NCBI GenBank assembly: GCA_002269645.1
Contig: NIVC01003740.1
Coordinates: 15,616-79,615 of the forward strand
Direction: 5' to 3'
DNA from: Macrostomum lignano
Taxonomy: Eukaryota
DNA: 64,000 nt
The position numbers were made by a program, and so were the translations under genes. Shown one piece after another: positions 13,819 to 61,144 of the stretch (position 1 is the first letter of the stretch; each line of letters opens with the position of its first letter). The notes beneath the pieces were generated by a model. The model searched no databases, had not been told where the DNA came from, and worked only from the letters and a program-made list of their open reading frames with translations.

Positions 13819-13926
13819 ATGGGTCTTTGAAGAGTGGGGTTATCTAAGCTACTGAGTCTAGGAGCGAACTCAAAAGCGGTTCCCCATCACTCCAGCAGTT
13901 GCCAGGCGGCCGGTCCAGTTTTTGCA

Positions 13927-30954: not shown

Positions 30955-32144
30955 ATGGAAACAAAACGCATATTTCTTCTCGCCTGTGCCTTAATGGCGC
31001 TAATCATTGTTACTAATCACTATTCCCGGAAACAAACTGCATCACCTCGGAGTCGTATCCCTTCCGGGCCCAACAATTTGACCGCTTCAAAAGTACATCT
31101 CATTCGAAACAAAGGCCTGACCGCTGAAGAGTCGCTGCCAACGCTGAGCGATGTCGAAATGATCAAGAACTGTCCTCCGTACAACGAGCTTCGAAACGTC
31201 GACTTCACGAACCCCAGCCTGCGACACCGGCTGTGTCAGGAGACGCCGGCCTACCAGTTAGTCAGGGGCAAGTTCCCCTGTGCAAGCTGAACAGGAACTT
31301 ACCGCAGCAGATGTACACCATTGTCAGACAAGGGTCTCCTGTGGCCAATGTGACCCGAGCGATGGGCGGCCCTCTAATGCCGATGTTCACCTTCGGCAAG
31401 GAGGACATGATTTCCGCGCATATGCTAAAACACAACGACTGGGAAAGCAGCTCTATTCGGACGATGCTCAACCTGTTACAGAAGCTTCCGAAAAACTCTG
31501 CGACGTTCCTCGATATCGGCAGCAACCTTGGCATCTACAGCCTGCAGGCCAGAGAGCTCGGGTATCCCGTGGTGGCCATCGATGCAAACATTCGCACACT
31601 GGTCAGGCTGCAGATGTCAGCGAAGCAGCTGAACTTGCTTGACGACAAGCTGAGGCTCTTCTGGGGCTTCATCAGTGACGACGTGGCGGTCAAGCGGATC
31701 AGCTGGGACGCTGACGGCATGAATTGCAATGTTGGAGGCGGCTCAGGCGGATTGGCTGACTGGAAACGGCAGGTCAAGAAGTCAATCGAGGACACGATTC
31801 CCGTGACCACTGTCAAAGCGGACGAGCTTCGAGCGCACATCGGCACCAAGAATGTGGTCATCAAGATGGACATCGAGTCCGGTGAGCACCTGTTCATGAA
31901 GACTGGCGAGAAGCTGTTTAGAGAGTTCAACATCATGGCGCTGCAGATGGAGTTCTGGCGGAAAAAACTCAGTAACGGACCGCAATTGTCCAAACATTAC
32001 GAGTTTGTGACGCACTTCATGACCTCGAGGAACTTCTCTCTGCTGTCCATGAGCTTCCAAGTGCAGAACATCGCTACATTCAACGAGTGGGACGGACTGT
32101 GGGTCAGAAACGACTTTGTGGCTCAAGTTGCAAAGAAAGTTTGA
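30955..32144 (+). CDS. FkbM-family SAM-dependent methyltransferase with an N-terminal signal anchor; intronless, one apparent frameshift near 31233-31290
   Basis: ORF 30955-31290 (hydrophobic N-terminus) overlaps ORF 31233-32144 in another frame. The second ORF has FLDIGSNLGIYSL, VVAIDAN and VIKMDIESGE motifs. No GT-AG intron joins the two frames. Confidence 0.75.
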
Positions 32145-38213: not shown

Positions 38214-41200
38214 ATGGCTGGACAGGGACAGGCTGGTAACTCTGGAATGGAACAGCTTATTTTGATAATGAATAAGCTGCAAGATGCTTGTTCTTCATCT
38301 GGAACTGCCCACAAATTTGATTTGCCACAAATAGCTGTTGTTGGAAGTCAAAGTGCTGGAAAAAGCAGTGTTTTGGAAAACTTTGTTGGAAAGTAAGTAT
38401 ATTATAATGAGTTAATTATGATTTTATGAGCTATGGTAATTATTAATGGTTTTTATAACTAAATCAAATCAAATAAAAGAATACTCATTTTAGAAACAAC
38501 CATTTTAAATAGTGATGAACTGAATGTAGATTTTTGCAAGTTTTTAAAACCAAATCCAAATGTGTTTCCAAATGTAAAAAAAGTGAAAAGTAAATGGTGG
38601 GAGTAACTATGACACCTTTCATTGACAAAAACCTTATCATCTAATTAGTAATCATATTAGTATTGTACATTAGTTTACTAGCAAGATTCAATCTATCTTG
38701 GGCTTATACTATATCTATCTAGTATCTGAATTGAAGTGAACTTAGAATTGAACTTCATTCTTATATATCTAATCTAACTACTAATTCCAATTACTAATAC
38801 TAACTGACATTGCATTTGTGCAATTTGATGACTTTACCATGTACAGTTAATTGTTATTACTTATGTTTAATCAATTATATTTATAAATACTGATGCAATA
38901 ATAGATTTGAAACTAATTACCTATAATACAAAACTTTAATCTTTTTCAATGTATATGCCAATTTATTCACAATCATTACATCTATCAAATCTATCCCTAT
39001 CTGTTTATTAAAAAAACCATTGCTACTAGTAATGCTATGCAAAAATTAAGATAAATATGCAACAAGGCAAGGTATTTATTTTGTGTTAGGCTACTTGCTT
39101 GATATAGTAAATAAATATCTATAGGTCAAGCTATAATAAAAGCTAAAGCCAAAGGAATGATTATAATATAATACAATTCCAATATAGCATCTTTTAGCAT
39201 CTATTTCTCTAATTATTACCAATAGGAAATAAGTGAAATATATAGACCTAGGCTAGCCTAGTATCTATTATTATCTATTTAGACACTTAGAGCTATGACC
39301 ATTTTAGTATATAGCTATCTTGGTCATGCGCCATATAATTTAAGTTTGTTTAAAATGAAAATATTTGTAATACTTTAAAGACTTTTTGTTCAAAAACCTT
39401 TCTTAGAAAACTCAACTTCTGAAAAATGAATGGCCTTTTTAGAAAATTTTTTAGCATTTTAGGGATTTTTTGTTTTCGGCCTACAGTGGCATACATTTAG
39501 CAAAGATAAAATTCTTGTTCCAGCATATATTACTACATGATCTAGACCTTGGTATATTACCACACTATTGTCAAAAAGGTATCTAGTACATACCAGAGCT
39601 TTTTGGACAAAATTTTAGCTAGGTGAGGACCAAATATACCAAAAAATGAAAATGTGACCTTGTCAAAAATGCCAAAATTTCAAAATTATTCAACCTTACT
39701 TTTAGGCTGCAGTAATAAAAGAACTTTTTTATATTATAACAATTTTTAAATAGCCAATTTAGCAATAGACAATCTGGCAATAGTCAATCCAGCAACAAGG
39801 TATAAACCTATTAAATAGGCTATTTGACATTTAAATAGATTTGAGAGCTTTCATATGTAATATTATAATTATTACAATTAGCAGACTCAAAATCCATGGG
39901 TTTCAATAGCTTGTTTTCTTAATGATGACATTACTTTAAAAAAAGGGAAACTGTATTAAATTAATACATTATTTATTTTCAGTAAGAGATGCACACTAGT
40001 TTTATAATTAAATGCCAAACCACCTAGCAGTTATTTTCCACTTCATAGCTTAATAGAGATGTCAACTGGGAAGTTCCAACACAACCATCATGCATGTAAA
40101 AAATTCACAACACATTATTTAACATTTGACATAATACCCTAAATTATATCAGAAATAAAAATAGCCATAAATGTTTAATTTTCATTTGAAAAGATCCAAT
40201 ACTATCCTACTAAAATGAATTCTCTATATGTAAAATTCAAACCTACATGTAAAAAGTTTTGTTTGTATTTAAAATCCATATAAAATCTACAATACAAAAT
40301 CTGTTGCCAGATTGTCTATTGCTGCTTTGACTATTACCAGATTGTCTATTGCTAGATTGTCTTGTCCCTATATTGACTAGAAGCCCAACCATTAAGGATC
40401 TTTTTCCATTGTTACATTTGACATTTATATGTACATTTTAACAAAATAGGTGGCATGTCTATTACTCCTTTATAACAACTTATAATCATGAAGGTACAGT
40501 ACCTAAATTCTTTAGAATAGCACTATCACTTTCCATTATTCTATATATATTACTCAGACTCACACTATCAAAGTCACCTTTTAATTAAGCACTACCTTTT
40601 GTTATAGAAACTAAAGCTACTTAACAAGTACAAGTACCTATTTTCAAATAGCTTTGTAAACCACTTTTTGTAAACCAAATACAACTTTTTAAGATTCAAA
40701 CATACTAAATATGCATATTAATGAACTATGAAGGGAAGGGCTAATGCATGCCAGAAAATTCTGGCATATAGGACACCTTTGTAATTATAGCTGCCAAATT
40801 AGCTAGATATAGTTGTAAAAGTGTCTAAGCCTTAGTCAATTTGCCTGCATCCAATTCAGCTGCTTCTAGTTTGTCTATAAAATAGTTTAATGAGCATTTT
40901 GTTTATATGCTACCTTTTTGTCTATGTTTATAGACAGTATAAAATATACGAGACAACATTAAACAACTTTTCCTAATTGCACTAGCAATCTATAGTCTAG
41001 ATCATGGTAGGTATTTGCTAGAAAGAAAACTAGTTTTTTGATTATATGCCAATATAAATAAAAAATTATACAAAAGGTAAAGTTGCTTATACACAAACTT
41101 TTTTAGAAAAATATTTGCAAATAGCATGTTTTTTGAATATTTAATCCCTTTAGCATCAAGCAATTTCTTAGTCACATTGCATGTACTGTCACGGAAAAAT

Positions 41201-44200
41201 TTCTGATTGAACAGTGCAAGTTTAAAGAAAATTGGTTGAGTCATTTTTGCTAAAATCGATCACACACATACCTACCTACCTACCTACTGACAGACCATTT
41301 TTAGTATATGGAAGTTTTCATTTTTAGTATATCTGAACTATTTCAACAAAAAATAGTTTAACTAAACTTTAAAGCATTTGTTTTTAACTAGAAACTATTA
41401 ATATTTGCTTCCATTTATTTTTAAAAGAGCTTTCTCTAATTGATATTTAATTACACAATATATGCTAAGCTTAAACTTTGGTTTTTTGTATGTCAACTGT
41501 CATACATGCGCAACCTCCAAAATTCAGTCGGCCGTGCAACTAAGTTTTAACAAAAATGCGACGTAGTTTTTGGCCAAAAATGCGACTTACATGTGAAAAA
41601 ACCCTAAAGCAAAATTAACGCAACTTTGGGTAAACGGCAGGAGTAACTATAACTGTCTTATTAAGTCAAAATGCCTCGTCAGCTACTTAGTACTACTATT
41701 AGGGTTTTTTGGGTGGCCATTTTTGCGACTTCCTTGGTTGGCCGCCAAATCGGTCGGCCGGATCGGCCGACTGTTGCGCATGTATGTCAACTGTATATAC
41801 TAGTGTTACCTGAAAATTCTATATGCTAAATGTTCACCAAGATTCTCAACAAGGGCAAAAATATATTGAATTTTTTGGCATAAAGGCTACCTTCTGGACT
41901 ATGGTAGACAATTAGTATTTTAATTAGTACAAGCATATATCTTTACATACAACATAGGCATTGTGTTTAGCATTTACATGCATATGAAAAAGATTAGAAA
42001 TAAACTATGCATTATTTAAGAGCAATAAAATTCAATAATTCAGAATATATGTATTTTAAAATATGGCCTATTTGTCATTATTATATCAAAAATAGTAATC
42101 TTTTTGTTTTATTTGGAAAACAAACTATATATCTATACAATTAAGTATAGTTATATAGCCAATAAAGGAGAAAAAATTTTTATTATTACATACCATGTGA
42201 TTAATAGTGTATATATATACATAGAGTATGATCTAGACAAATTGCCTATTATTATTTTGTCCATTGGTCATTTCATTTGCCTGTAGCTGAATTGGTAAGT
42301 AGATAGATTGATTAGGATCCATTATGGATAGTTTATATAAATCGTATATCACACAGATGAGAAAATCAATCCGGGTGTCTATATACTTAAACATGTTTTA
42401 AATCTTCAATTCCAAGTTTAGTGTTTCTAAGTTTCTTAAGTTTAAGTTGCATAAAAGCTCAATTATACTATTTAGCCTTAAGTCAATTAGTCAAAGAATA
42501 TCAAATAATCAAAATAATGTTTAGCTAACTATGAAAAACATTTTTAAATATTAGTATGATACCTGCATCTAGAATCAAAATTTTCCTGCATACTTTCATG
42601 CTCAACAGAGTATTGTATCTATTTTTTAGATTTTTTCCAATAGAGACCAAAAGCACTTATTATGTTTAGTTCATAGTAGAGGTTAGACATGATTGCAGTT
42701 GTGATCACAATTTTGTGAATTCATGACCATTTTTTACAATTGTGGTTGTGGTTTGCTTTAGCAGGTTTATGAGATAGTGATTTATTTACTTGCTTTTTTA
42801 TCTTTTTAACTCATTTTATAAGTTTTGTTATTGATTTTATACATTCAAGTTTCATTAACAATATAATTGCCATTACTTGTTTTAGATACCTTAGGCTTAG
42901 TAGTTGTAGTTAATGACTCAAACAATAATAAAAAGTATACTAAATGATATCACAGTCACAATCAACATCATGCCTAGATGCAAAATTCATGAAATTTCAC
43001 TTCCAACTAAATATTTCATGCTTGTCTAACCTCTAGTTCCAAGTCAATTTGTCTGCTGCCAATTTGGTTCTTTTTGGTTTTAACTTTGTTAGTATAATAT
43101 TAATGGCCAAATTTGTAAAATTGGTCTGCATCTAGTCTTTCTTGTCTAAGATGTTTTTTTCCTAACTTTAGTAAAATTTGGGCACTTAGTCACAATCTAC
43201 CATATAATCTATACATGTCTTGTGTAAATTATTTTGGTATGCATTTACATTTTAGTTTTGTCATGGTTTCTATAAGGCATTTATTTCTATGGATGCTGAG
43301 ATAGTAAAGATGTAGTTTTGGTCTGCATATTCTTTTGCCCATAGACAAAATTCCTACCAAGATTTGCCCACAGTGCATTTTGCCTTATTAGGCATACCCC
43401 ACCATGCTTCTAAAAGAGCCAGGCAACCTAGTTTATGGGATCCAAAGCTTTTTAGAAATCTATGAGGAGCATGGACAATTTACATAGCTCTTTGTGAGAC
43501 TCTGGTGTCAATGATAGCTCATATACCAGATTACAGAAACTTGTTTTGCCATTGACCATCTGGGTTGGAAGCCACTCTGGGTTTTGAGAAGCCGCTCGTT
43601 GATAATGGGCTAAATGCAGTTGCAAAGAATGGTGTTAGGGACTCTAGCCAGAGTGCACTCTAGGGCAGGGGTTTGCAAACTTCTTACCTTAAAGGGCAAG
43701 ATAAAAAATCTAGCTTTTAGCTCATGGATATAGGCCAGATGAGAGTGGAAAGGAGAGGAAATGGGGAGAGAGATGAGAAATGACGAAAGAGAGAGGAGGT
43801 GAGAGGCAATATGAGAGAGGCCATGAGAGAAGAGATGAGTGAGAAGAAAGGAGAGAAGATGAGAGGAGAGGTTGAGAGGAGTAGAGAGAAGAATAGAGAT
43901 GAGAGGAGAGCAGGAGAGATAACTGAGAAGAGACTAACCTTGAGCTGGCTAGATTGCCATTCTTAAGTGTCCAAGGACCCAAGGGCCAGATAGAGGGGCT
44001 TTGCAGGGCACATGAACTCGTATGGCCCATGGGCTAAGTTTGCCCATCCCTGCTCTAGGGCAATGCACACAGGTTGTCAAGGCCACAAGAGTTGCTCTTT
44101 TTGGGAATGTCCATGAACTTAGGAGTTTTCCATTGCTCTGAGGCACCAAAATTCTATAGTATTTCAACTTTAAATAAATTATCTCTTGACCAATTTTTGT

Positions 44201-47200
44201 AGCCTCTATAGTATTGAGCTTATAGTATTATATTAACTTATTCTAGTTGTTTTCAAAAGTGACACTCACACTGTATAGCTTGATTTATAATTTGTTTGAC
44301 CAATAATATTTTCAAACAAAAATATTGATAGAGCCAAATGCTCCTACCATTATATTAAAGTACCTAAAAATAAGTAATAAATATAATATGCTCGTAAAGA
44401 TTTTTAGCTATCCTCTCCACAAAAATTTTACCTAAAACAATCAATACAAATTTTAGAGACTTTCTGCCTCGTGGTTCCGGCATTGTCACCAGGCGCCCGC
44501 TGATACTCCAGTTGTTGTACAATCCATCGGGTAGGAAGGCCTTTTTGACACAATAATTCAATAGTTAGTTACTGCTACTGTTCCTTGACCTCTTACTGTT
44601 AGCAATCTAAGAGTTGCCCACATATTCCAAACCTCCCCTGACCCCATTGCCCTATTCAAGACCTTCCCTGACCCCACCACCATCTTCAAGACATTCCCTG
44701 ACCCCACCACCATCTTCAAGACATTCCCTGACCCCACCACCATCTTCAAGACATTCCCTGACTCCACCACCATCTTCAAGACCTTCCCTGACTCCACCAC
44801 CATCTTCAAGACCTTCACTGGCTCCACCACCATCTTCAAGACCTTCCCTGACTCCACCACCATCTTCAAGACCTTCACTGACCCCACCACCATCTTCAAG
44901 ACCTTCACTGACCCCACTGCCATCTCGAACACCCGCCCTGACCCCACTGCCATCTCCAACACCCGCCCTGACCCCACTGCCGTCTCCAACACCCGCCCTG
45001 ACCCCACTGCCGTCTCCAACACCCGCCCTGACCCCACTGCCGTCTCCAACACCCGCCCTGACCCCACTGCCATCTCCAACACCCGCCCTGACCCCACTGC
45101 CATCTCCAACACCCGCCCTGACCCCACTGCCATCTCCAACACCCGCCCTGACCCCACTGCCATCTCCAACACCCGCCCTGACCCCACTGCCATCTCCAAC
45201 ACCCGCCCTGACCCCACTGCCATCTCCAACACCCGCCCTGACCCCACTGCCATCTCCAACACCCGCCCTGACCCCACTGCCATCTCCAACACCCGCCCTG
45301 ACCCCACTGCCATCTCCAACACCCGCCCTGACCCCCCAACACCCGCCCTGACCCCACTGCCATCTCCAACACCCGCCCTGACTCCGCTGCGTTGGCAGCC
45401 GAGTACGCCGAGTTCGGGCACCAGCGCGGCCGGAAGTACACCAACTTCGAGGAGGTCCGCCAGGAGATCGAAGCGGAGACGGACCGGCTCACGGGCCGCA
45501 ACAAGGGCATCTCCAATGTGCCAATCATGCTGCGCGTGTTCAGCCCGCACGTGCTCAATTTGACCTTAGTTGACCTGCCCGGCATGACCAAAGTGGCTGT
45601 TGGCGACCAGCCGCCCGATATCGAGGTGCAAATCCGCAACATGCTTCTGGAGTTCATCACCAAGGAGAACTGCCTGATTCTGGCCGTCAGCCCGGCCAAC
45701 TCGGACCTAGCCAACTCCGATGCGCTCAAACTTGCCAAAGAGGTTGCCGATTGTTTTTGCGTGCAAATATCGGCGCCATATTCATTTTGCAGGTGCGGAG
45801 TTATATTAATCTGCTACTGTTCGCTCCCGCCAGGTGGACCCCGCCGGCACCCGCACCATCGGCGTCATCACCAAGCTGGACCTCATGGACCAGGGCACCG
45901 ACGCCAGGGAGGTTCTGGAGAACAAGCTGCTGCCGCTTCGCCGCGGCTACATCGGCGTGGTCAACCGATCCCAGAAGGACATCGAAGGTGAGACTGCTCA
46001 CTGCTCAGACTCTACTCCACTGACTGCTCAGACTCTACTCCACTGACTGCTCAGACTCTACTCCACTGACTGCTCAGACTCTACTCCACTGACTGCTCAG
46101 ACTCTACTCCACTGACTGCTCAGACTCTAATTCACCCTATAATGCCCATAGACCTCATCTACACAGCTCCCTGCTCCCCTCTGAAACGTCACCCCAGGCC
46201 GCAAAGACATCAAGGCAGCCATGGCGGCGGAGCGGAAGTTCTTCCTGTCGCACCCGTCCTACAGGCACATGGCGGAGCGCATGGGCACCCCGTACCTGCA
46301 GCGCTGCCTTAACCAGCAGCTCACCAACCACATCCGGGAGACGCTGCCCTCCCTGCGCAGCGAGCTGCAGACCAAACTGCTAGCCATGGAGAAGGACTAC
46401 CAGGCCTACGCCAATTTTAGTCCCGACGATCCCAGCATCAAGACCAAGGCGATGATGACGTAAGCCGCCGTTTGCCAGCTGTCTGGGGTTTTTCCGCTGG
46501 GCTGCCCGCGATCATCTTTCATCCATTCCTATAGGAGGTTGTGGGGGGTTTCCATCGAGCTGATGCACTCATTCCAAGGGGGGTTAAATGTGGGGGGTTT
46601 CCATTGAGGAAATGCTTAGGCGATCGCATGAAGCAAGCCAAAGTGGCCATCTTGCAGGATGATCAACCAGTTCACTGACGAGTTCACCCAGTCCATCGAA
46701 GGCTCCGGCGAAGTCAGCACCAAGGAGCTGTCCGGCGGAGCCAGAATCAATCGCATCTTTCACGAGAGATTCATGTACATGCTGCATCAGGTAAGATAAT
46801 TAGCAGTGCGTGCATACTGAGCTGTCACCTTGTCAAGTGCTTTATTCAATTTTATAACTTGAGCCCGTCTTAAGCTGAGCCTAAGCTGTCCGATATTTAA
46901 TTTACCAGTGCTAGAGTACAAAGATTTTATCGCTACATATCGGATTCTTCCAGTGCTAGAGTACAAAGATTTTATCGCTACATATCGGATTCTTCCAGTG
47001 CTGGAGTACAAAGATTTTATCGCTACATATCGGATTCTTCCAGTGCTGGAGTACAAAGATTTTATCGCTACATATCGGATTCTTCCAGTGCTAGAGTACA
47101 AAGATTTTATCGCTACATATCGGATTCTTCCAGTGCTGGAGTACAAAGATTTTATCGCTACATATCGGATTCTTCCAGTGCTGGAGTACAAAGATTTTAT

Positions 47201-50200
47201 CGCTACATGTCGGATTCTTCCAGTGCTGGAGTACAAAGATTTTATCGCTACATGTCGGATTCTTCCAGTGCTGGAGTACAAAGATTTTATCGCTACATGT
47301 CGGATTCTTCCAGTGCTGGAGTACAAAGATTTTATCGCTACATATCGGATTCTTCCTAAAATGTGTTTAGTAAACTGACAAAGTAAATATTTTTATAGCC
47401 AGAATAGTATAAGAAGAATTTATTAGAGATTTTATCAAAGGGCACTGGGCCAGAATAGAAGCAGAGGTCACTGAGCCAGAATAGAAGCAGAGGGCACTGA
47501 GCCAGAATAGAAGCAGAGGGCACTGAGCCAGAATAGAAGCAGAGGGCACTGAGCCAGAATAGAAGCAGAGGACACCGAGCCAGAATAGAAGCAGAGGGCA
47601 CTGAGCCAGAATAGAAGCAGAGGGCACTGAGCCAGAATAGAAGCAGAGGGCACTGAGCCAGAATAGAAGCAGAGGGCACTGAGCCAGAATAGAAGCAGAG
47701 GGCACTGAGCCAGAATAGAAGCAGAGGGCACTGAGCCAGAATAGAAGCAGAGGGCACTGAGCCAGAATAGAAGCAGAGGGCACTGAGCCAGAATAGAAGC
47801 AGAGGGCACTGAGCCAGAATAGAAGCAGAGGGCACTGAGCCAGAATAGAAGCAGAGGACACTGAGCCAGAATAGAAGCAGAGGGCACTGAGCCAGAATAG
47901 AAGCAGACGGCACTGAACACTTAACCGCTGCGGGAAAGCTCACAAATAAGTAATTTAATCCGCACAGCATGCCACTAACTCATTCTATTGTCACTTTAAA
48001 GCGTTTCGAAACTCATTTCTAGGCATCCCTGTTTGTAGGACTTCATGCTAAGCAGAGAGTGCGTTTTTATACAGTGCACTGATCCAAAAGAACTCTGCTT
48101 TTAATGCTTTGCATTGCCACCCATTCCAATGTAGCGTGTAAACAAATATTTCTAATACAGAAACTAACAGATTGTGTTTCAATTGTTCTTGAATTTTAAT
48201 CATTAGCCGTATCTAACTGCCCGTAGTTCACTGCAATTTACGGTGCGGCACTATTGGATAAAAAATGTAGCAGTGCTGTTGGATTGCTTATCCCCTGCTC
48301 TTTTCCTAGCTTTGTTCTGACACCATCTCAGCCACATAGGGTGATGTACAGCATCGAGACATTGCCTGGGTAGTCAGACAATTGGGCAAACACTGAGACA
48401 AACAATTAAAAACACTGAGACAAACAATTGGACAGACACTGAGACAAACAATTGGGCAGACACTGAGACAAACAATTGGGCAGACACTGAGACAGACAAT
48501 TGGGCAGACACTGAGACAAACAATTGGGCAGACACTGAGACAGACAATTGGGCAGACACTGAGACAAACAATTGGGCAGACACTGAGACAGACAATTGGG
48601 CAGACACTGAGACAGACAATTGGGCAGACACTGAGACAGACAATTGGGCAGACACTGAGACAAACAATTGGGCAGACACTGAGACAGACAATTGGGCAGA
48701 CACTGAGACAGACAATTGGGCAGACACTGAGACAGACAATTGGGCAGACACTGAGACAAACAATTGGGCAGACACTGAGACAGACAGGCAGACACTGAGA
48801 CAAACAATTGGGCAGACACTGAGACAAACAATTGGACAGACACTGAGACAAACATAAAAACACAAAAGGACAAACACAAAGATGCACTTGTAGACACTTA
48901 CGCAGACACCAACACAAAACGACAGATAGACGAACAAATAGAGACAAAGACAGGCAGAAATAGTTCTGTCTCAGAGGCTGTTCTCACGCCATTAATGCAC
49001 GCACAAATCGATTTTTGCAATCTTGAGTAGAAGTGGATTTCCAGCCGCACAGTCAAAATGGCCTCAACTTCGCTCCACTGCAGACCGAATCCGATGAGCG
49101 CGAGCTGCGCAAGGAGATCAGCTACACTATTCGCAATGTGCACGGCATCAGGTAGGAGCTCTGCTCTTCATCTGGTAACGGGTGTTTAGTGCCGGAGTCC
49201 TCTAAATCTATAATGGGATCCTTTTACTGTTTCCTTATTGCTTTCCGCACTAAAATCTAGAATCCATTCGAAACATTCCATCTTCCCGTGACTAACATCC
49301 CATTTCCCATGTTGAGAATCTCATTTCCTATATTGAGAATCCCATTTCCCATGTTGAGAATACATTTCCCATGTTGAGAGTCCCATTTCCCATGTTGAGT
49401 GTCCCGTTTCCCATGTTAAGAGTCTCATTTCCCATGTTGAGAGTCCCATTTCCCATGTTGAGAGTCTCATTTCCCATGTTGAGAGTCTCATTTCCCATGT
49501 TAAGAGTCTCATTTCCCATGTTGAGAGTCCCATTTCCCATATTGAGAGTCCCCTTTCCCATGCAGAAAATCCCACACTGGGTGCACCCGATCCCCGCAGG
49601 ACCGGCCTGTTCACTCCCGACATGGCATTCGAGCGCATCGTCAAGCAGCAGATCATGCGGCTGAAAGAGCCGACGCTGAAATGCGTGGACATGGTGATCG
49701 AGGAGCTCATCAACGTGGTGCACAAGTGCACGCAGCAGATGGCCAGCTACCCCAGGCTGCGCGAGGCCGTGGAGACCACCGTCACCAACCGGATCCGGGA
49801 GCAGGAGACCCGGGCCAAGACCCAGCTGATGCTGCTGGTGGACATCCAGCTGGCGTACATGAACACCAATCACGAGGACTTTATCGGCTTCGCCAAGTGA
49901 GTCTCGGGTTGCGTGGCCCGGATGCGAACACAATTCCCATTGCCGAATCAGTCATTGCGAATCTCACTTTTACCTTCAGCGCCCAGCAACGGACTGAGAG
50001 CACCAGGAAGGAGCGAGTGGCGAACCAGGTGCGGCAGCTTATGCTGGGGGTTGGGATAATAAAGCTGGGGGATTCGGTTCGGGGCAGTGTTGGCACCACT
50101 GCGATTTTTTATCGCTCAGCGATTTTTTATCGCTCAGCGATTTTTAATCGCTCAGCGATAATTTTGTCTGTTTTGCTCATTTCCTGCGATTTTTTGTGGA

Positions 50201-53200
50201 CACCAGTCCTTTCAACTTTTTATCAAGTACTGTGTTTCATTTTGTGCTCAATTTAAGTGTCATGAATGTCATCAATATAGCGTGAGGCTGTGCAAGCCTC
50301 CGGTTTTGAAGCTCGGCGAAAGGAGATTGAGCATGCTGCGGTCGAGCGAGCACTGAAGAAAGCTGCTGACGAAACGGCTCGGCGAAAGAGACAGGCGGAG
50401 TTCGGCGCTCGATCTGTCCTGCCAAAGGTTCCAAAGAAAAAATGAACATCCACTGAAGAGCCTGCAGTTTTGCTTGACTAACGTTTGACTAGCCAAACAA
50501 AGATTCACGTAAAAGTATTTCTTTCCCTACAGTTACCGACATTGACCAACAATTTAAATATTAAAAGAATTCATTTTAGCTATATAGAATTGAAAACAGA
50601 TTCAGACAACTGGAATATAGCACAAAATTTAGTTGCAAAATTGTTATTACTTATTACTCATCAGCGGTCGTAGCGTCTTGTGTTTTTGTTGGTTGCTCGG
50701 TTCGGTTTCATAATGAACATCAGTAATCTATATTATACACTCAGCAACAGTCAAAACCGCCACCCTACCGAGAGAGGCGACTTCTCTCTCACCTTAACTG
50801 CAAGTGACGTAACTTGCGCCACGGCGTGGCTGGAGCTGGGTGAGAGTGAATGCAGGAGAGGGCAATCAGGGGATGCCCCATCTGCTTCTTTCACCCCACA
50901 TTAGACGGAGCAGGGTGGCTGGTGCGGTCGGAGTTCGCCTGACAATCCGCAGCAGACGTCGATTTGCCCTGGCTGTTGAGCCGCGGAGATCATGGCGCTG
51001 GCTGCCTATGGCTGCGTGCTGAACACTACCAGTATCTTGGGACTTCGTTAACAGCGCCGGAATTGTTGAACGTGATCGGCCAAATTGGCGAGCAACTGCG
51101 CTGATGGATGCACCAGCTTCTACTCGTAGCATGTCAACAGCGCGCCATCGTTCAGCGTCTGTCATATGCCTGACCATTGTCACGTGTACTGTTGCACCCC
51201 AAACCCCAACCTCAGTCCCTTTTGTACTCTCACCCTGGAATTCACTCTCACCTAGCTTTAGCCACGCCGTGGCGCAAGTTGCGTCACTTGCAGTTGAGGT
51301 GGGAGGGAGGTCGCCTCTCTCGGTAGGGTGGCAGTTTTGACTGTTGCTGAGTGTACGCTCGTATGTATGCCTGTCTTATCTTAAGAAAATGCTTGTGTTG
51401 TATGACTACTTCACTGCTTCGGCGTAAATGAGAGTTGCATGCAGTTATTGCAAATTGTAGCAGTTCTTTCTGGTCAAATAGAAGATGGAATTAGAAATGG
51501 AAAGCTAAAAAATAAAGTTGTTTTCGCATACTGGCGCCTTCGGGGTTCGAGATGTGCTAGAGATGCGATGTGTGGATATGCTAGAGGTGGGTATGTGATA
51601 TGCTAGAGATAGGGGAATGGGTATGGGATTTGGGATATGCCAGAGGTGGGATATGGGAAATAGGATCCATGAGATATTAGAGATGGGATCTCTGGAATTC
51701 TAGAGATGGGATCTCTGGGATGCTAGAGATGGGATCTCTGGGATGCTAGAGATGGGATCTCTGGGATGCTAGAGATGGGATCTCTGGGATTCTAGAGATG
51801 GGACACTGTAATAGTTTATGCTAGACTGGATCAGAAAATTGGGTGAGACAACATGGTTTGGTTTGCTGCTGTCACAATTATCATTATTATTCCTCTCTGT
51901 AAAACCGTCAAAGTGTCTGAATCTGAGCTGAGCAAATACCACTGAGAATTAAATATTCTGATTTATGGAATTCGTCTGCGCCCTCTGTACTTCAGCTGTG
52001 AGTACAGCCGTTTTTGCTGAGTTGCCCAACAAAATGTGAATTAATGAGAGGACTCAATCTGAGCTCATTATATATTTTTTTTTCGCGAGGCCCATATGCA
52101 GCAATCAGGCGGAGTTGTTCGCTTTTGCGCAGTGCACTGTACAGGCTCACAGTCATTCAAGTCGCCTCTCCTCTGTCCAGGTGATTCGCAAGGGCTATCT
52201 CACGCTCAACAATGTCTCCCTTATGCGCGGCGGCTCTAAGGAGTGCTGGTTTGTGCTCACCGCTGAGTCGCTCATGTGGTTCAAGGACGAGGAGGTGAGC
52301 TGACCGGCTGACTAGCTGACCCACTGATTCCTCAATGACCCACTGACTCCTTCCCTGAGCCACTGATTTTTCAATGACCCACTGACTCCTTCCCTGACCC
52401 ACCGATTCCTCAATGACCCACTGACTCCTTCCCTGACCCACCGATTCCTCAATGACCCACTGACTCCTTCCCTGACCCACTGATTCTTCAATGACCCACT
52501 GACTCCTTCCCTGACCCACTGATTCCTTTCCTGACCCACTGATTCTTCAATGACCCACTGACTCCTTCCCTGACCCACTGATTCTTCAATGACCCACTGA
52601 CTCCTTCCCTGACCCACTGACTCCTTCCCTGACCCACTGATTCTTCAATGACCCACTGACTCCTTCCCTGACCCACTGATTCTTCAATGACCACTGACTC
52701 CTTCCCTGACCCACTGATTCCTTTCCTGACCCACTGATTCTTCAATGACCCACTGACTCCTTCCCTGACCCACTGAATCTTCAATGACCCACTGACTCCT
52801 TCCCTGACCCACTGATTCTTCAATGACCCACTGACTCCTTCCCTGACCCACTGATTCTTCAATGACCCACTGACTCCTTCCCTGACCCACTGATTCTTCA
52901 ATGACCCACTGACTCCTTCCTGACCCACTGATTCTTCAATGACCCACTGATTCCTTTCCTGACCACTGATTCTTCAATGACCCACTGACTCCTTCCCTGA
53001 CCCACTGAATCTTCAATGACCCACTGACTCCTTCCCTGACCCACTGATTCTTCAATGACCCACTGACTCCTTCCCTGACCCACTGATTCTTCAATGACCC
53101 ACTGACTCCTTCCCTGACCCACTGATTCTTCAATGACCCACTGACTCCTTCCCTGACCCACTGATTCTTCAATGACCCACTGACTCCTTCCCTGACCCAC

Positions 53201-56200
53201 TGATTCTTCAATGACCCACTGCACTCCTTCCCTGACCCACTGACCGACCACATTGCCGCAGGAGCGCGAGAAAAAGTACATGCTGCCCCTTGACGGCCTG
53301 AAGATTCGAGACGGCGAGTCGCGCGGCCTGTTCGGCAAGAAGAACGTCTTCATGCTGTTCCACTCTGAAGGCCGGTGGGTGTTACGTATGCAATCTGTAT
53401 GCAGTTTACAACTCAGCCGCTTATACCCTAAGCTGTGATATGATAAACAGCAGCCCTCCCATCTCCATCCCCCAGCAACACGTACAAAGACTACAAGACG
53501 CTGGAGCTGGCCGCCGAGTCCGCAGACGAAGTGGACAGCTGGAAGGCGTCGTTTCTGCGTGCCGGCGTTTTATCCCGAGCGGGAGAGCCGCGAAACGGAT
53601 GAGGTAAAGCTGCGTCTGGCATGAGTGGCTAGCTGGGTATATTTTGTCAATAATTGCTACTGTCAAGTAGTCCAAAGCGAGACTTTGTTGAGCAGTGTTA
53701 GTGTCGCGTGGGGTCTGTCTGGTTGCAAAAATGCAGTTGGCTGAGTTCGACGAGCCAGTTGGTCACGTGATCGTGCGGTCATACGGTCGCCAAATTATCA
53801 AGTAGATGTAGGGCCCTATTGTACTTTTATTACTCGAATTCGGTCGTTGGTGTACTTTTATTGCTCATTAGTCTCTGTCAGATAGTCGCACATCTCTTTG
53901 TTGCTCTACTAGTACCTAAAGCAGCTATGATTGGCTATTGCTCTCACTCACTGGTTGCACTGAGAATGCTCAGCTATAATTGGCTATTGCTCTCACTCAC
54001 TGGTTGCACTGAGAATGCTCAGCTATAATTGGCTATTGCTCTCACTCGCTGGTTGCACTGAGAATGCTCAGCTATGATTGGCTATTGCTCTCACTCACTG
54101 GTTGCACTGAGAATGCTCAGCTATAATTGGCTATTGCTCTCACTCGCTGGTTGCACTGAGAATGCTCAGCTATGATTGGCTATTGCTCTCACTCACTGGT
54201 TGCACTGAGAATGCTCAGCTATGATTGGCTATTGCTCTCACTCGCTGGTTGCACTGAGAATGCTCAGCTATAATTGGCTATTGCTCTCACTCACTGGTTG
54301 CACTGAGAATGCTCAGCTATGATTGGCTATTGCTCTCACTCACTGGTTGCACTGAGAATACTCAGCTATGATTGGCTATTGCTCTCACTCACTGGTTGCA
54401 CTGAGAATGCTCAGCTATGATTGGCTATTGCTCTCACTCACTGGTTGCACTGAGAATGCTCAGCTATGATTGGCTATTGCTCTCACTCACTGGTTGCACT
54501 GAGAATGCTCAGCTATGATTGGCTATTTCTCTCACTCACTGGTTGCACTGAGAATGCTCAGCTATAATTGGCTATTGCTCTCACTCGCTGGTTGCACTGA
54601 GAATGCTCAGCTATAATTGGCTATTTCTCTCACTCACTGGTTGCACTGAGAATGCTCAGCTATAATTGGCTATTGCTCTCACTCGCTGGTTGCACTGAGA
54701 ATGCTCAGCTATAATTGGCTATTGCTCTCACTCGCTGGTTACACTGAGAATGCTCAGCTATAATTGGCTATTGCTCTCACTCGCTGGTTGCACTGAGAAT
54801 GCTCAGCTATGATTGGCTATTGCTCTCACTCACTGGTTGCACTGAGAATGCTCAGCTATGATTGGCTATTGCTCTCACTCGCTGGTTGCACTGAGAATGC
54901 TCAGCTATAATTGGCTATTGCTCTCACTCACTGGTTGCACTGAGAATGCTCAGCTATGATTGGCTATTGCTCTCACTCACTGGTTGCACTGAGAATACTC
55001 AGCTATGATTGGCTATTGCTCTCACTCACTGGTTGCACTGAGAATGCTCAGCTATGATTGGCTATTGCTCTCACTCGCTGGTTACACTGAGAATGCTCAG
55101 CTATAATTGGCTATTGCTCTCACTCACTGGTTGCACTGAGAATGCTCAGCTATGATTGGCTATTGCTCTCACTCGCTGGTTACACTGAGAATGCTCAGCT
55201 ATAATTGGCTATTGCTCTCACTCGCTGGCTACACTGAGAATGCTCCACCGCCTCAGCAGCTCGGCGAAGATCCCACAGACTCGGACGGTCCGGGCCAGCA
55301 GCCCGACAGCTTGCGCGACCGGCAAGTTGAAATCATTCGCAGCCTGGTCAGCAGCTATTTCCAGATCTGCGTCTCCGAGCACAAAGACCTGTTCCCCAAG
55401 ATCGTGGTGCACCTGCTGGTCAACTGCGTAGGGCTTGATGGGTCTTTGTGACCGCCTGTCTGGCTTCGCGGCTTGGGGGGGGGATATTCGCTGATGATTT
55501 CACTCTGATTCCAGCTGCGATCACGCCTATGCTCCCAGATTGACTCACGCATTGCCTGATTGGCCCGCCACCCCAGCCCGAGCAGGACCTCGGCAGCACG
55601 GATCCGCAGATGGAGCGCCAGGTGGAGACCATCCGCAACCTGGTCGAGTCCTACATGAAAATTGTGGACAAAACCCAGCGGGATATTGTGCCCAAGACTG
55701 TCATTCACATTGTGGTCAATGAGGTAATGCCCTCGGAGCCATGACTGCCGTTCCCCTTCCTAATTGTGATTCCATCAATACTATGCATTGGCTTTAACCA
55801 CTCTAATGAACTGCAATTCACCAATGGATAGGGTTCTCAGCGCTTGTAGCCTTGAAAATTAGTGAACATGATTGATTAATGTTCAGCCCACCTGGCAGTG
55901 CCAATTGCATTCGTTTCATACCTGTCATTAGCCTAATCAGAAACCGAAGTTTCCGAAGTTTAGAGAATACCCAATTTAGAGAATATCAAATGTTAGCCTT
56001 ATCTTGAAAAACCATTCCCAGCCTCAGCTTGTAGACCCAATCCCAGCCTTCAATGTACACCCAATCCCAGCCTCCGATGTACACCCAATCCCAGCCTTCA
56101 ATGTACACCCAATCCCAGCTTCCAGTGTACACCCAATCCCAGCTTCCTGTGTACACCCAATCCCAGCTTCCAGTGTACACCCAATCTCAGCTTCCAGTGT

Positions 56201-59200
56201 ACACCCAATCCCAGCTTCCAGTGTACACCCAATCCCAGCTTCCAGTGTACACCCAATCCCAGCTTCCAGTGTACACCCAATCTCAGCTTCCAGTGTACAC
56301 CCAATCCCAGCTTCCAGTGTACACCCAATCCCAGCTTCCAGTGTACACCCAATCTCAGCTTCCAGTGTACACCCAATCCCAGCTTCCAGTGTACACCCAA
56401 TCCCAGCTTCCAGTGTACACCCAATCCCAGCCTGCACTGTAGGCCAAATCCCACCCACCCGCCCCGCAGTTGAAGGACTTCCTGAAGTCCAGCATGCTGG
56501 CGCAGCTGTACGGCGGCTACGATCAGAACCAACTGATGGAGGAGTCGCCCGAGGAGGCGCAGCGCCGCGAGGAGACGCTGCGCATCTACAAGGCCACCAA
56601 GGAGGCGCTGAAGATCCTCAGTGACGTCTCGGCCAACACCACGCACACGCCGACTCCGCCGCCTGTGAAGGATGACTGGATCCAGCCGGACTCGATGCCC
56701 GCCCCGCAGCCTCCGACTCACGGCCGGCGACCCCGTTGGCGGCGGCCCGCCGTCTCAGCCGCCTCCTGTAGCGGCCGGCCCGCCGTGCCCTCACGACCGG
56801 CGCCCTCTGTACGCGCCCTGGAGGCGCCGGGGCTCCCGGCGGTCAGCTGCCTCCGCCAATGGTGCCACAGTAAGTGCCCAGGCCTCTGGTGTCTTGGGGG
56901 TCTGCGATTTCCTGCATCCCCTATATTGATTGAATAGGCGATCCATGTGTTGCTTTTCTGTAGCTTGATTTGTTGCGCTTCGATTTTAGCTATTCGATTG
57001 GGCGCCAAACTGTGTTTAAAAATTCAATGTAATTTCACTATACAGTATTAGGACTCAGAAGCGCATATAATAAAGCGTTAAGGCACGCCAAACAGGGTGT
57101 CTGAGTAGCGCCAAACAGGGTGTCTGAGTAGCGCCAGACAGGGTGTCTAAGTTGCGCCAAACTGGGTGTTTAAATGGCGCCAGACAGGGTGTCTAAGTAG
57201 CGCCAAACAGGGTGTCTAATTAGCGCCAAACAGGGTGTCTGAGTAGCGCCAGACAGGGTGTCTAAGTTGCGCCAAACAGGGTGTTTAATTAGCGCCAAAC
57301 AGGCGGGTGTCTAAGTTGTGCCAAACAGGGTGTCTGAGTAGCGCCAAACAGGGTGTTTAATTAGCGCCAAACAGGGTGCCTAAATGGCGTCAAATAGGGC
57401 TGTTTAAATAGCGCCAAATAGGGGTGTTTAAACAGCACCAAAAGGGTGGTAAATGGCACCAAAAGGGTGGTAAATGGCACCAAAGGGTGGTAAATGGCAC
57501 CAAAAGGGTGGTAAATGGCACCAAAAGGGTGATAAATGGCACCAAAAGGGTGGTAAATGGCACCAAAAGGGTGGTAAATGGCACCAAAAGGGTGATAAAT
57601 GGCACCAAAAGGGTGGTAAATGGCACCAAAAGGGTGATAAATGGCACCAAAAGGGTGGTAAATGGCACCAAAAGGGTGGTAAATGGCGCCAAAAGGGTGA
57701 TAAATGGCACCAAAAGGGTGGTAAATGGCGCCAAAAGGGTGATAAATGGCACCAAAAGGGTGGTAAATGGCGCCAAAAGGGTGGTAAATGGCACCAAAAG
57801 GGTGATAAATGGCACCAAAAGGGTGGTAAATGCCACCAAAAGGGTGGTAAATGGCGCCAAACATGGGAGTCCAAAAAGCGCCAAATAAAACGCCCAGAAG
57901 CGCGCCGAAAGAAGAATCAATAAAGTATGCATAAAAAACCGAAATAGGCGGTCTCCACTTGCATGGACTCGCTTGCATTCTTTACCTACCAACCCCATCA
58001 GACATCGCGTCAAAATCGCCAGCTCCTGAGTAAGTTGAACTGTTTTGCGGTCGCTTCCCGTTCTGACTGTCCCGTCTGCTGTGTCCGTGCTTTGAGTGCT
58101 GCTTTGAAAACCGTTGCACTCGCTTCGTCTACTGTCAGTCGCATCACAGTTCGGATTTTATTGTTTAGAGCCAATAAAATTTTACTTGCCAATCGTACTG
58201 GCCTTAAAGGCGCACTCGCTCGCACTGAACTCTTTGAACACGCGCTTGTGTAGGAAGCCGCTGGGCCAGCGGTCTGTTTCCACTGGCGCTTTTGGCTTTG
58301 AAGCCGCAGCCGCCGCTTCGTTGGCCGCGTCCTACCAGGCTGCCCAGCCGTTTTCAAAGCAGTAGACTGTCATATTGGACCGCCTGCACCACCGCAATCC
58401 CTGCGGCTGGCAGTGCTGGATTGGATCTCTGGACTCGGATATATCATCTGTCTGTGTTATCTGTGCTTTAACGGTCTTGGATTTTTATATTTATAAAACT
58501 GACAAGTTAAGATGATTATGCATAAGAGCATTGGATAAAATTCTTATCCAGACAAAGATAAATATTCTTGCAGAATTTAGATTAGCAATTTTGTGTTCCT
58601 CCATTGGCTCTGCGCAGCAATACAATTAATTGCCAGCGAATCTTTTATTCGGACTGAAAAACTCCGATCTCATCTTGGTAGCAATTCGTCTCTCGGGCAG
58701 GACAAACTTTTTGGAGTCGGGATCTCGGCACAAGGTCGGACGGGTTCTCGGGACAGTGTCGGGACGGGTTCTCGGGACAGGTCGGGACGGATCTCGGGAA
58801 AACTCGGGACTGGATCTCCGGACAACTCGGGACGGGATCTCCGGACAACTCGGGACGGGATCTCCGGACAGCTTTGGGACGGGGATCTCCGGACAACTTG
58901 GGACGGGATCTCGAGATAGCTCGGGACGGGATCTCGGGACAACTTGGAAAATCTCGGGACAACCTGGAAAAGCTCGGGACAACTTGAAAAGCTCGGGACA
59001 ACTCGGGATCTCAGGACAGCTCGGAACATCTCGGGACAGCTTGGGACGGGATCTCAGGAACACTCGGGATCTCAGGACAGCTCGGGACAGCTTGGTACGG
59101 GATCTCCGGACAACTTGGGACGGGATCTCGAGATAGCTCGGACGGGATCTCGGGACAACTTGGAAATCTCGGACAACCTGGAAAGCTCGGGACAACTTGA

Positions 59201-61144
59201 AAAGCTCGGGACAACTCGGATCTCAGGACAGCTTCGGAACATCTCGGGACAGCTTGGGACGGGATCTCAGGAACACTCGGGATCTCAGGACAGCTCGGGA
59301 CAGCTTGGTACGGGATCTCAGGACAACTTGGGATCTCAGGATAACTCGGGATCTCAGGACCGCTCAGGACAACTCGGGATCTCGGGACAACTCAGGATCT
59401 CGGGACAGCTTGGGACGGGATCTCAGGACAACTCGGGATCTCAGGACAACTCGGGATCTCGGGACAGCTCCGGACGGGATCTCGGGACAACTCGGGATCT
59501 CAGGACAACTCGGGATCTCAGGACCGCTCGGGAAAACTTGGGATCTCGGGACGGGAACTCGAGACAGGATCTCGGGATCTCAAGACAGAATCTCATGACA
59601 ACTCGAGACGAGATCTCAGTACTTGATTTGGCCATAATCACAATCGGAACATCCATATATTACAAACTTTTACTCCATTACTCTACTGCGAGCGTAACAG
59701 CCTTCAGACTGTGAACCACAGGCTCAGAAGAGATATCTGCACAGCTGTTTAGCATATTTATTATACTTGAGAAAAATCTTCCGCTTTCATTCTTCAAACA
59801 TTTTTTCTTTTTCGCTATCTCAACAATAATTTAGAAGCTTGCATACTGCCTAAATAGTCACATTTTCAAAAACTCCTCCCTCAACCGTGGCAGGATTCTG
59901 GAATGGAGATGGAATCCCATTCTAGCACTGCCCGGAATCCCCCTAAAGTCGCAGCTGGCACTCAGCTAAGCTTCAATCCGACTGCCTTTTGCTCTCTATT
60001 TAACCGGCTGATCAATGCGGTGGAAATGTTTCAACTGGATACTTGCTACACGCTACTTACTACTGCCTGCTCTTCTTCAGCAGTAGTGCAATACGCTTAT
60101 TAGACGTATTTTTGCTATTTGTTCAATTTCCGTCACCGATTGTAGGCGAGCTGTGAATGACAGCCACGGCCTGCCGCCGCCCCTGCTGCCTGCGTGAGTA
60201 GCGAGCCGCCGGGCCCTCGCTTCCCTCATCGGCTTTTTTATCCTCGCTCATTTTTATTTGCCTGAGTGGCATTCTGTTGCTTGATCGCATGCTCCTTTTT
60301 GCTTTAGAAGCAGTCAGATTTAATTGCCAATATTTCCTTAAGTATTATTTTTATTTTAAAGTATACTTTTCACTGCATACAAACACAAGTTTATGTCTTG
60401 CATGCTCGTATGAAAATATTTTGGCAAATTATACTCACCCACTCATTATGGCTGTTGTGCCACCCTCCCAGATCCTCAGTTGCTGTACCAGCCTCCCAGA
60501 TCCTCAGTTGCTGGGCCAGCCTCCCAGATCCTCAGTTGCTGGGGCAGCCTCCAAGATCCTCAGTTGCTGGGCCAGCCTCCCAGATCCTCAGTTGCTGGGC
60601 CAGCCTCCCAGATCCTCAGTTGCTGGCCAGCCTCCAAGATCCTCTGTTGCTGGGCAAGCCTCCCAGATCCTCAGTTGCTGGGCCAGCCTCCAAGCTCCTC
60701 AGTTGCTGGGCCAGCCTCCCAGAGTGTCAGTTGCTGAGGCCAGCCTCCCTGAGTGTCAGTTGCTGAGGCCAGCCTCCAGATCCTCTGTTGCTGGGCCAGC
60801 CTCCCAGATCCCCAGTTGCTGGGCCACCGCCGCCCTCCCATGCCCAGGGTGCGGGGCGCCAGACCCAGCACCAGGATCAGTATTGCATGTTCGTGTTGTT
60901 GCAAAGCCAAAAAGCGGCACATTTCTCATAGACTCCGAGCTATCGTATACTAGGATTCGACTCTGCTTGTCTAGAAAGCTCGCATAGAAACTGTTTCAGC
61001 GGTTCGGCAGCCGACCCCCCCCCTGCACCGTCCCGCAGGCGGCCAACATCCGGCACGCCGCCCATTCCGTCCAGGCCGAACATGGCTGATTGTTTCTGGG
61101 CGCCTAGCAACCGATCGAGCCTTGATTACGAGTTTCGAACATAA
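38214..61144 (+). CDS. DNM: Classical dynamin (GTPase, middle, PH, GED, PRD)
   Basis: Exons: 38214-38392 (GSQSAGKSS), 44457-44530 ([12 protein letters not shown]), 45399-45742 (DLPG), 45834-45987 (TKLD), 46198-46459, 46658-46790, 49084-49151, 49600-49896, 49980-50028, 52181-52294, 53262-53374, 53476-53603 (PH; one extra T), 55577-55723, 56470-56869 and about 61000-61144 (PPIPSRP). The 3' end and PRD frame are uncertain. Confidence 0.93.
41501..41786. mobile_element. 286-bp hAT-type MITE in dynamin intron 1
   Basis: Perfect 14-bp TIR CATACATGCGCAAC; 8-bp TSD TCAACTGT at 41493-41500 and 41787-41794. Confidence 0.9.
43666..44052. mobile_element. 387-bp hAT (Charlie-like) MITE in dynamin intron 1
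   Basis: Imperfect TIR CAGGGGTTTGCAAACT / CAGGGATGGGCAAACT; 8-bp TSD CTCTAGGG at 43658-43665 and 44053-44060; GA-rich interior. Confidence 0.88.
44625..45382. repeat. 30-bp minisatellite, dynamin intron 2
   Basis: Unit ACCCCACTGCCATCTCCAACACCCGCCCTG, grading from a variant ACCCCACCACCATCTTCAAGACCTTCCCTG. Confidence 0.95.
46002..46127. repeat. 23-bp minisatellite, dynamin intron 4
   Basis: Unit ACTGCTCAGACTCTACTCCACTG, starting at the donor. Confidence 0.9.
46905..47356. repeat. 45-bp minisatellite, dynamin intron 6
   Basis: Unit CCAGTGCTGGAGTACAAAGATTTTATCGCTACATATCGGATTCTT. Confidence 0.95.
47440..47915. repeat. 26-bp minisatellite, dynamin intron 6
   Basis: Unit GAGCCAGAATAGAAGCAGAGGGCACT. 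Confidence 0.95.
48375..48850. repeat. 24-bp minisatellite, dynamin intron 6
   Basis: Unit CACTGAGACAAACAATTGGGCAGA. Confidence 0.95.
49295..49562. repeat. 21-bp minisatellite, dynamin intron 7
   Basis: Unit CCCATTTCCCATGTTGAGAGT. Confidence 0.93.
50281..50445 (+). other. Candidate alternative terminal exon or orphan coding fragment in dynamin intron 9
   Basis: TAG at 50278-50280, then a phase-0 open frame [60 protein letters not shown] at about 50560. Confidence 0.35.
50738..51353 (-). mobile_element. Internally deleted Tc1-like transposon (616 bp) retaining the N-terminal HTH region
   Basis: ~114-bp TIRs starting CACTCAGCAACAGTCAAAA (50738-50851 / 51240-51353) with TA on both flanks. Minus ORF 50866-51183 ([30 protein letters not shown]) is a Tc1/Tc3-like HTH. 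No DDE domain. Confidence 0.88.
51590..51805. repeat. Degenerate 23-bp repeat, dynamin intron 9
   Basis: Unit approximately TGCTAGAGATGGGATCTCTGGGA. Confidence 0.85.
52313..53243. repeat. 39-bp minisatellite filling dynamin intron 10
   Basis: Unit CTGATTCTTCAATGACCCACTGACTCCTTCCCTGACCCA. Confidence 0.95.
53925..55243. repeat. 49-bp minisatellite (~27 copies), dynamin intron 12
   Basis: Unit ATGATTGGCTATTGCTCTCACTCACTGGTTGCACTGAGAATGCTCAGCT. Confidence 0.96.
55257..55427 (+). CDS. Diverged duplicate of the dynamin GED-start exon (candidate alternative exon)
   Basis: CAG acceptor and GT donor, phase 0/0. Encodes [57 protein letters not shown], with 18/35 identity to exon 55577-55723. Confidence 0.75.
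56015..56435. repeat. 24-bp minisatellite before the last GED exon
   Basis: Unit CCCAATCCCAGCTTCCAGTGTACA. Confidence 0.95.
57085..57860. repeat. Adjacent 23-bp and 21-bp minisatellites
   Basis: GCGCCAAACAGGGTGTCTGAGTA (57085-57420), then GGCACCAAAAGGGTGGTAAAT (57430-57860). Confidence 0.93.
58254..58365 (+). other. Candidate alternative last exon of dynamin
   Basis: TAG acceptor at 58251-58253. Phase-2 frame [38 protein letters not shown]-rich. Confidence 0.4.
58720..59615. repeat. Complex degenerate repeat built on GGGATCTC / GGACAACTC modules
   Basis: Direct reading; higher-order blocks recur (for example about 58950-59160 and 59170-59310). Confidence 0.9.
60455..60830. repeat. ~28-bp minisatellite in the last dynamin intron
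   Basis: Unit GCCTCCCAGATCCTCAGTTGCTGGGCCA. Confidence 0.92.

Follow-up and report, generated by a model that had tools for sequence, protein, structure and literature searches.

The dynamin gene and its duplicated exon

The window analysed here is a stretch of 64,000 nt from Macrostomum lignano (contig NIVC01003740.1 of assembly GCA_002269645.1, positions 15,616 to 79,615 of the forward strand). It contains a classical dynamin gene, in which the exon encoding the first part of the GED is present as two diverged tandem copies. The downstream copy, exon B, is the canonical first GED exon. The upstream copy, exon A, is probably a functional and selectively maintained alternative first GED exon, used in place of exon B rather than together with it. 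The features of the gene on which the following analysis is based are listed below, with positions in the window.

38214..56869, + strand: classical dynamin gene with GTPase, middle, PH and GED parts and the beginning of the PRD, from tblastn and three-frame translations
53476..53603, + strand: exon 11, encoding the last part of the PH domain and the beginning of the PH-GED linker; shared upstream splice partner, donor GAG/GTAAAG
53922..55245, no strand assigned: 49-bp minisatellite of 27 copies, which occupies most of the intron 5' of exon A (Tandem Repeats Finder)
55257..55427, + strand: exon A (57 codons, phase 0/0), the upstream and diverged one of the two first GED exons
55428..55576, + strand: intron between exon A and exon B, 149 nt
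55577..55723, + strand: exon B, canonical first GED exon, 49 codons, phase 0/0
56470..56869, + strand: exon 13, encoding the remaining GED (stalk end and BSE helix) and the start of the PRD; shared downstream splice partner

With human DNM1 as the tblastn query, the exons for the GTPase, middle, PH and GED parts map in order with 44–84% identity. The gene starts with the ATG at 38214, and there are at least 13 coding exons in addition to exon A. The gene may continue past 56869. In the window, tblastn shows that the duplication is limited to the first GED exon and that the other dynamin exons are single. This includes the middle-domain exon with the TGLFTPD... segment, which is duplicated in vertebrates and is found once here, at 49598-49894.

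The flanking junctions of the exon pair are the donor after 53603 and the acceptor before 56470. Exon A lies after the PH domain and before the remaining GED, and its position and phase are right for a classical dynamin, provided that one T is removed from exon 11. The initial annotation had described two adjacent phase-0/0 exons. This holds for exons A and B themselves, but the frameshift in exon 11 had been overlooked. The frame of exon 11 switches at a run of four T (53567-53570), as an apparent 1-nt insertion. The unshifted frame runs into a TGA at 53600-53602. The shifted (+1) frame matches the VYPERES/VYPER... sequence at the loci of other animals and ends in phase 0 at a good donor, which indicates either that the assembly has a homopolymer indel here or that the mutation is private. 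The phase-0 junction of exon 11 is valid only if one T results from an error of assembly or sequencing, or from a private mutation. Probably it is a homopolymer error of the assembly; otherwise the allele would be null. In the PRD part of exon 13 (56700-56869), PRD-like peptide pieces are spread over three frames. This suggests further assembly indel errors in G/C runs, although the sequence is of low complexity and the assignment is uncertain.

Homology, splice signals and conservation of exon A

Exon A (171 nt) and exon B (147 nt) are both open, in phase 0/0, divisible by three and bounded by GT-AG introns. The claim that exon A has no stops and intact splice sites is borne out, as it is open over 57 codons with both AG and GT in place. 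With the exon boundary given as a slash, its acceptor is ...ccaccgcctcag/CAG, where the AG at 55255-56 is followed by a second, in-phase AG at 55258-59 (NAGNAG). Its donor is TGC/GTAGGG, with the GT at 55428-29. The acceptor of exon B is ...cgccaccccag/CCC (AG at 55575-76) and its donor is GAG/GTAATG (GT at 55724-25). The GTAGG type of donor seen at exon A recurs in the constitutive exon 7 (CAG/GTAGGA). The 49-bp array stops 11 nt before the acceptor of exon A, so the branch point of this exon is probably inside the last minisatellite unit.

In BLASTP, exon A and exon B are identical at 19/40 residues and positive at 27/40 without a gap (E 3e-13), a similarity that is well beyond chance. This confirms both the coordinates and the homology in the original description of a tandem duplication of the first GED/stalk exon, and its count of 18/35 identical residues is correct as well. 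Both exons match residues ~650-691 of DNM1, and exon B is 73-80% identical to the canonical exons of other animals. Against the Pfam GED profile (PF02212), exon A alone scores 30.7 bits over profile positions 3-38 of 92, above the cutoff of 21.4, and exon B alone scores 38.2 bits. Joined to exon 13, exon A gives a full-length match of 81.1 bits (positions 3-92 of 92) and exon B one of 88.5 bits. Exon A also aligns to the GED of solved structures, namely residues 640-738 of dynamin-3 (5A3F) and residues 645-742 of dynamin-1 (3SNH).

Over the 41 aligned helix codons, exon A and exon B show 52% DNA identity, and 17, 14 and 28 differences fall at codon positions 1, 2 and 3, respectively. By the Nei-Gojobori method, the proportion of synonymous differences (pS) is 0.78, past the saturation limit, and that of nonsynonymous differences (pN) is 0.40. 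Among the 19 codons for identical residues, 12 differ synonymously, including one serine encoded by AGC in exon A and by TCC in exon B. These synonymous differences indicate that the duplication is old.

The same divergence bears on the question of whether exon A is an assembly artefact or a mis-joined haplotype. The assembly seems to hold indel errors, as in exon 11 and probably in the PRD, and identical repeated copies of a GED exon are present in an unrelated gene model, KAF6779292.1 of Paragonimus kellicotti. Artefactual copies would, however, be near-identical, whereas the two copies here share only about half of their nucleotides, are unequal in length and have different flanks. The probability of an artefact is therefore negligible.

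Conservation was evaluated with 55 unique canonical GED exons from 99 loci, and positions conserved in at least 95% of them were taken as conserved. Exon A retains 15/20 of these positions but only 4/21 of the variable ones (Fisher p 0.0004). The conserved residues lost are P18S, L20R, E21D, K40S and M51V. Every position that is hydrophobic in the canonical exons is still hydrophobic in exon A. Of 17 residues invariant across 10 canonical exons, 14 are retained. In simulations of neutral drift, the probability of retaining at least 14/17 fell from 0.011 at 0.3 substitutions per site to 0.0015 at 0.4, with <5e-5 for 0.5 or more, and the probability of at least 19/41 identity was 0.002 at 0.75 substitutions per site. 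The 41-codon helix has no indel, and the 57 codons contain no stop. An even spread of changes, together with stops or indels, is the pattern of a neutral pseudo-exon, and exon A does not show it. These patterns support the view that exon A has been kept by purifying selection and is not a decaying relic. The initial annotation had argued for selection from changes that were mostly conservative. Selection itself is upheld by the saturated pS and the kept conserved residues, but many of the changes (D>V, K>S, T>E) are not conservative.

It is rather unlikely that exon A is a non-functional relic, once alternative or held for a time and now silent or spliced as noise. The weaker donor of exon A and the minisatellite adjoining its acceptor would fit a relic. 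On the other hand, the reading frame is intact and the helix free of indels despite the saturation at synonymous sites. Three quarters of the family-conserved residues and all hydrophobic core positions are kept, long-term drift is rejected by the simulations, and exon A passes the Pfam GED threshold alone.

Copies in other animals and other features of the window

A HMMER search with exon A against 1.84 billion representative proteins gave 27 matches, and most of these were fragmentary open reading frames (ORFs) from canonical GED exons. With exon A or exon A' (see below) as the query, word-indexed protein searches gave no candidates, and the one with exon B gave only five ORF fragments. Exact look-ups of ten ORFs from the window were without a match as well. 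No match to exon A was seen in the bacterial and archaeal genome contigs scanned. One protein, P0007, is a 181-residue ORF containing two GED helices. Its locus, L018 (Logan SRR30767268), has the following arrangement.

1005-1163: exon A', upstream diverged copy (...DPILERQVETICMLVQSYMKIVTVSVKDWFPKTCMRFILLH; acceptor cttcttccag/, donor CAT/GTGAGT)
1164-1202: intron between A' and B', 39 nt
1203-1349: exon B', canonical

The 39-nt intron is in frame and stop-free, and thus the gene caller fused A' and B' into the single ORF. Both copies have strong splice sites. The omega of the A'-B' pair is ~0.68, and conservation within A' is found in the N-terminal half, the C-terminal half being strongly diverged.

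The scanned JGI/NCBI metagenome contigs yielded 80 further dynamin loci. Tandem copies are also seen in one of them, L034 (JAAUYG010184082.1), as follows.

~1950-2102: exon A'', upstream copy
~3274-3423: exon B'', canonical, ~1.2 kb downstream of A'', with the PH exon before and the next GED exon after it

A'' and B'' are identical at 30/41 residues, with pS 0.76 (saturated) and pN 0.21, and both copies are well conserved. The conserved positions of the family are retained at 18/20 in A' and 19/20 in A'', and the changes concentrate at variable positions (Fisher p 2e-5 and 0.002, respectively). The initial annotation knew of no described case of such an arrangement. In full-text literature searches, which did not extend to the automated isoform annotations of public genomes, we found no report of a dynamin GED exon being duplicated or alternative. 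The arrangement is nevertheless not unique to this genome, as the tandem copies of two other animals, L018 and L034, demonstrate.

The contigs of P0002, P0003 and P0005 have no second copy of the GED exon. Those of P0001 begin 75 nt upstream of the GED exon and are uninformative on a second copy, and the look-up for P0004 gave no contig. Two of the comparative results would fit the reading of exon A as a relic: most other lineages are without the exon, and the omega of the L018 pair is compatible with relaxed constraint on A'.

An orthologous relationship of A, A' and A'' was considered and is unsupported, as each is closest to canonical exons and only two rare states link A and A'. One is a Phe common to A and A' at a position where 51/55 canonical exons have Val and 0/55 have Phe. 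The other is the loss in both of a Lys found in 53/55 canonical exons. These states could reflect common ancestry or functional convergence. Both a single origin and several origins of A, A' and A'' would be compatible with the pairwise identities, which cannot decide between them. The three identical GED-exon copies of Paragonimus kellicotti KAF6779292.1 (L019, LOND01000373.1) were rejected as a parallel, because copies of the last PH exon accompany them. The locus gives the impression of a segmental or assembly duplication, combined with a faulty gene model.

In the window, the introns of dynamin and of the neighbouring genes are crowded with minisatellites, which have units of 18-77 bp and up to 36 copies. 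The arrays include 53922-55245, 56030-56453, 52317-53243, 57086-57885 and 58718-59617. A 24-bp array stops 16 nt before exon 13. An Rfam scan of the window matched no family. The other features, all from Pfam matches, are as follows.

2511-3137, + strand: adaptor-complex medium (mu) subunit exon
~11100-11500, + strand: C2H2 zinc-finger protein
13834-14310, + strand: aminomethyltransferase (GCV_T)
20579-22438, - strand: nucleoside diphosphate kinase 7 (PH_NDK7_N and NDK)
31233-32144, + strand: 303-codon ORF with a weak FkbM-type methyltransferase match

Probable exclusive use of the two exons and its meaning for the stalk

Here we infer the splicing of exon A, its exclusive use and its functional consequence from the sequence. 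An old tandem duplication of exon B would have given rise to exon A. In each mRNA, exon 13 would follow exon 11 with one of the two copies, A or B, in between. The two resulting dynamin isoforms would differ only in the linker from the PH domain to the stalk and in the ~41 residues with which the GED stalk helix begins. Either/or would be the simplest use of the pair, because there is a single helix of this kind in dynamin and the two copies are in phase 0/0 between the same constitutive exons. The pair has all the sequence characters by which mutually exclusive exons are predicted: the exons are adjacent, homologous, in the same frame, stop-free and bounded by GT-AG, and differ by 24 nt in length, where differences in steps of 3 up to 60 nt are allowed (PMC5740500).

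Steric exclusion is expected when fewer than 50 nt separate the donor and the branch point (PMC5740500). The 149-nt intron is too long for this, and steric exclusion is ruled out here, in agreement with the initial annotation, in which this intron was taken not to enforce exclusivity. In L018, the 39-nt intron is below the limit of ~50 nt, so either/or use is forced, and exclusivity is predicted to be built in at this locus.

Between 55227-55240 (GGCTACACTGAGAA, in the last minisatellite unit 5' of exon A) and 55834-55851 (TTCTCAGCGCTTGTAGCC, 3' of exon B), a bipartite complementarity is seen. The duplex has a z of -4.2 relative to 40 mononucleotide shuffles. It was rejected as a selector mechanism, since its geometry would loop out both exons.

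Several observations weigh against a functional exon A in exclusive use. The donor TGC/GTAGGG is weaker than the donor of exon B, and the gene as assembled has the frameshift in exon 11. An enforcing mechanism is absent at the window locus, where the intron measures 149 nt and the two exons have lengths divisible by 3 and GT-AG boundaries. No inverted repeats of at least 11 nt were found in 53604-56470, and the search for docking/selector RNA duplexes gave no convincing competing pairing. In a permissive search, ~26 other genomic dynamin loci spanning the last PH exon, the intron and the GED exon had no second copy; thus, the second GED exon is apparently dispensable in most lineages. By pairwise identities, A, A' and A'' are each nearer to canonical exons than to each other, and the three copies, being without clear orthology, do not suggest cross-species conservation of exon A. 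Besides, the signature of selection integrates a long past, and a recent inactivation of exon A would be compatible with it. As for the missing mechanism, most validated human pairs of mutually exclusive exons likewise lack one (PMC5740500).

The inclusion of A and B together would give a 57-residue in-frame insert, so that the helix would be present twice in succession. The two exons have lengths divisible by three and are in phase 0/0, and the 149-nt intron could be spliced with the frame kept. The initial annotation was right in this respect, but the topology makes joint inclusion unlikely. The second helix would have to start again at the stalk's base, and only ~12 linker residues would be available to span a helix of ~41 residues, judging from the stalk architecture (PMC12550548) and the PDB matches. 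Joint inclusion is excluded in L018 by the 39-nt intron, and every spliced or intron-poor dynamin contig recovered has a single copy. We regard it as very improbable.

If exon A replaces exon B, as we favour, the change would fall on a defined part of the stalk. The dynamin stalk is an antiparallel bundle of the middle domain and the GED (PMC12550548). Interface 2, for dimerisation, is at mid-stalk, interface 3 is at the base, close to the membrane and the PH domain, and interface 1 is near the BSE (PMC12550548). The duplicated exon encodes the PH-to-stalk linker together with the initial two thirds of the GED stalk helix, which runs from the PH-proximal base up to the BSE-proximal top. The linker of exon A is 8 residues longer than that of exon B and is rich in D, P, G and Q. 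At variable positions, exon A shows the changes E>S, K>Q, D>V, K>S, T>E and V>F and has gained two Cys. The Kyte-Doolittle value is 0.25 for A and -0.45 for B, and 0.40 for A' and -0.54 for B'; A and A' are both less charged than their partners.

The A helix would pack in the same four-helix stalk with an unchanged core, because the family-conserved residues and every hydrophobic core position are kept. At the variable positions of exon A, which are presumably exposed, the surface would be less charged and more hydrophobic. The A isoform would thus carry a longer, acidic and Pro/Gly-rich linker on the unchanged stalk core. It is plausible that its stalk-stalk assembly interfaces, its PH-domain docking and autoinhibition, or both, would be altered.

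The closest known system is the pair of mutually exclusive exons 10a/10b of vertebrate DNM1 and DNM2. As the initial annotation had stated, this pair is in the middle domain. It is found from lamprey to human, while invertebrate dynamin is reported to be without it and to have a single isoform (PMC2916854). A mutation in one of the two exons leads to epilepsy in mice (PMC2916854). The pair described here resembles 10a/10b in being a tandem pair of stalk exons in a classical dynamin, similar in size and identical in frame, in which one helical segment differs. In both cases the pair appears to be old with both copies under selection (for 10a/10b, PMC2916854). Unlike 10a/10b, the present pair is of the first GED exon, after the PH domain, while the middle-domain exon is single, and the gene is of the invertebrate type. 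The divergence is 22/41 residues here and 14/46 in 10a/10b. The exclusivity and expression of 10a/10b are documented, whereas those of the GED pair are predicted.

The pair also shares all sequence criteria with the WebScipio/Hatje-Kollmar pairs, such as those of tropomyosin, SNAP-25 and CaV1.2 (PMC5740500). It differs from them in mechanism, as the window pair has none of the proposed types of enforcement (steric, U2/U12, frame-shift with nonsense-mediated decay, or RNA pairing); the steric type applies in L018. The diversification of a dynamin-family GTPase by alternative exons is common to the muscle isoform of DNM2, the isoforms of Drp1 and the C-terminal PRD variants. Their variation is reportedly in loops or disordered regions, as cassette inserts or at the termini. 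To our knowledge, none of them replaces a core stalk helix by a homologous copy.

The dynamin stalk governs dimerisation, the building of helices round membrane necks and the restraint by the PH domain. Vertebrates vary the stalk via the middle-domain exons 10a/10b. It can be speculated, as a tentative proposal, that invertebrates have, in the exchange of the first GED exon, a recurrent counterpart of 10a/10b, present in at least three animal lineages (those of the window, L018 and L034) through independent events or one old event. The isoforms would have the same core and a different, less charged surface, with V>F and the loss of the conserved Lys common to two of them, and hence a different assembly or PH autoinhibition. 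For annotation, an exon of the type of exon A is usually skipped by homology-based gene models. The interest of exon A will be greater if it proves to be expressed and recurrent across invertebrate lineages. If a selected second GED helix is true, it would be a natural experiment on which surface positions can be retuned while the core is kept. The removal of a single exon would then be a genetic handle on the role of the isoforms in animals with a single dynamin. If the proposal holds, the exchange of a stalk helix would be a convergent way of tuning dynamin.

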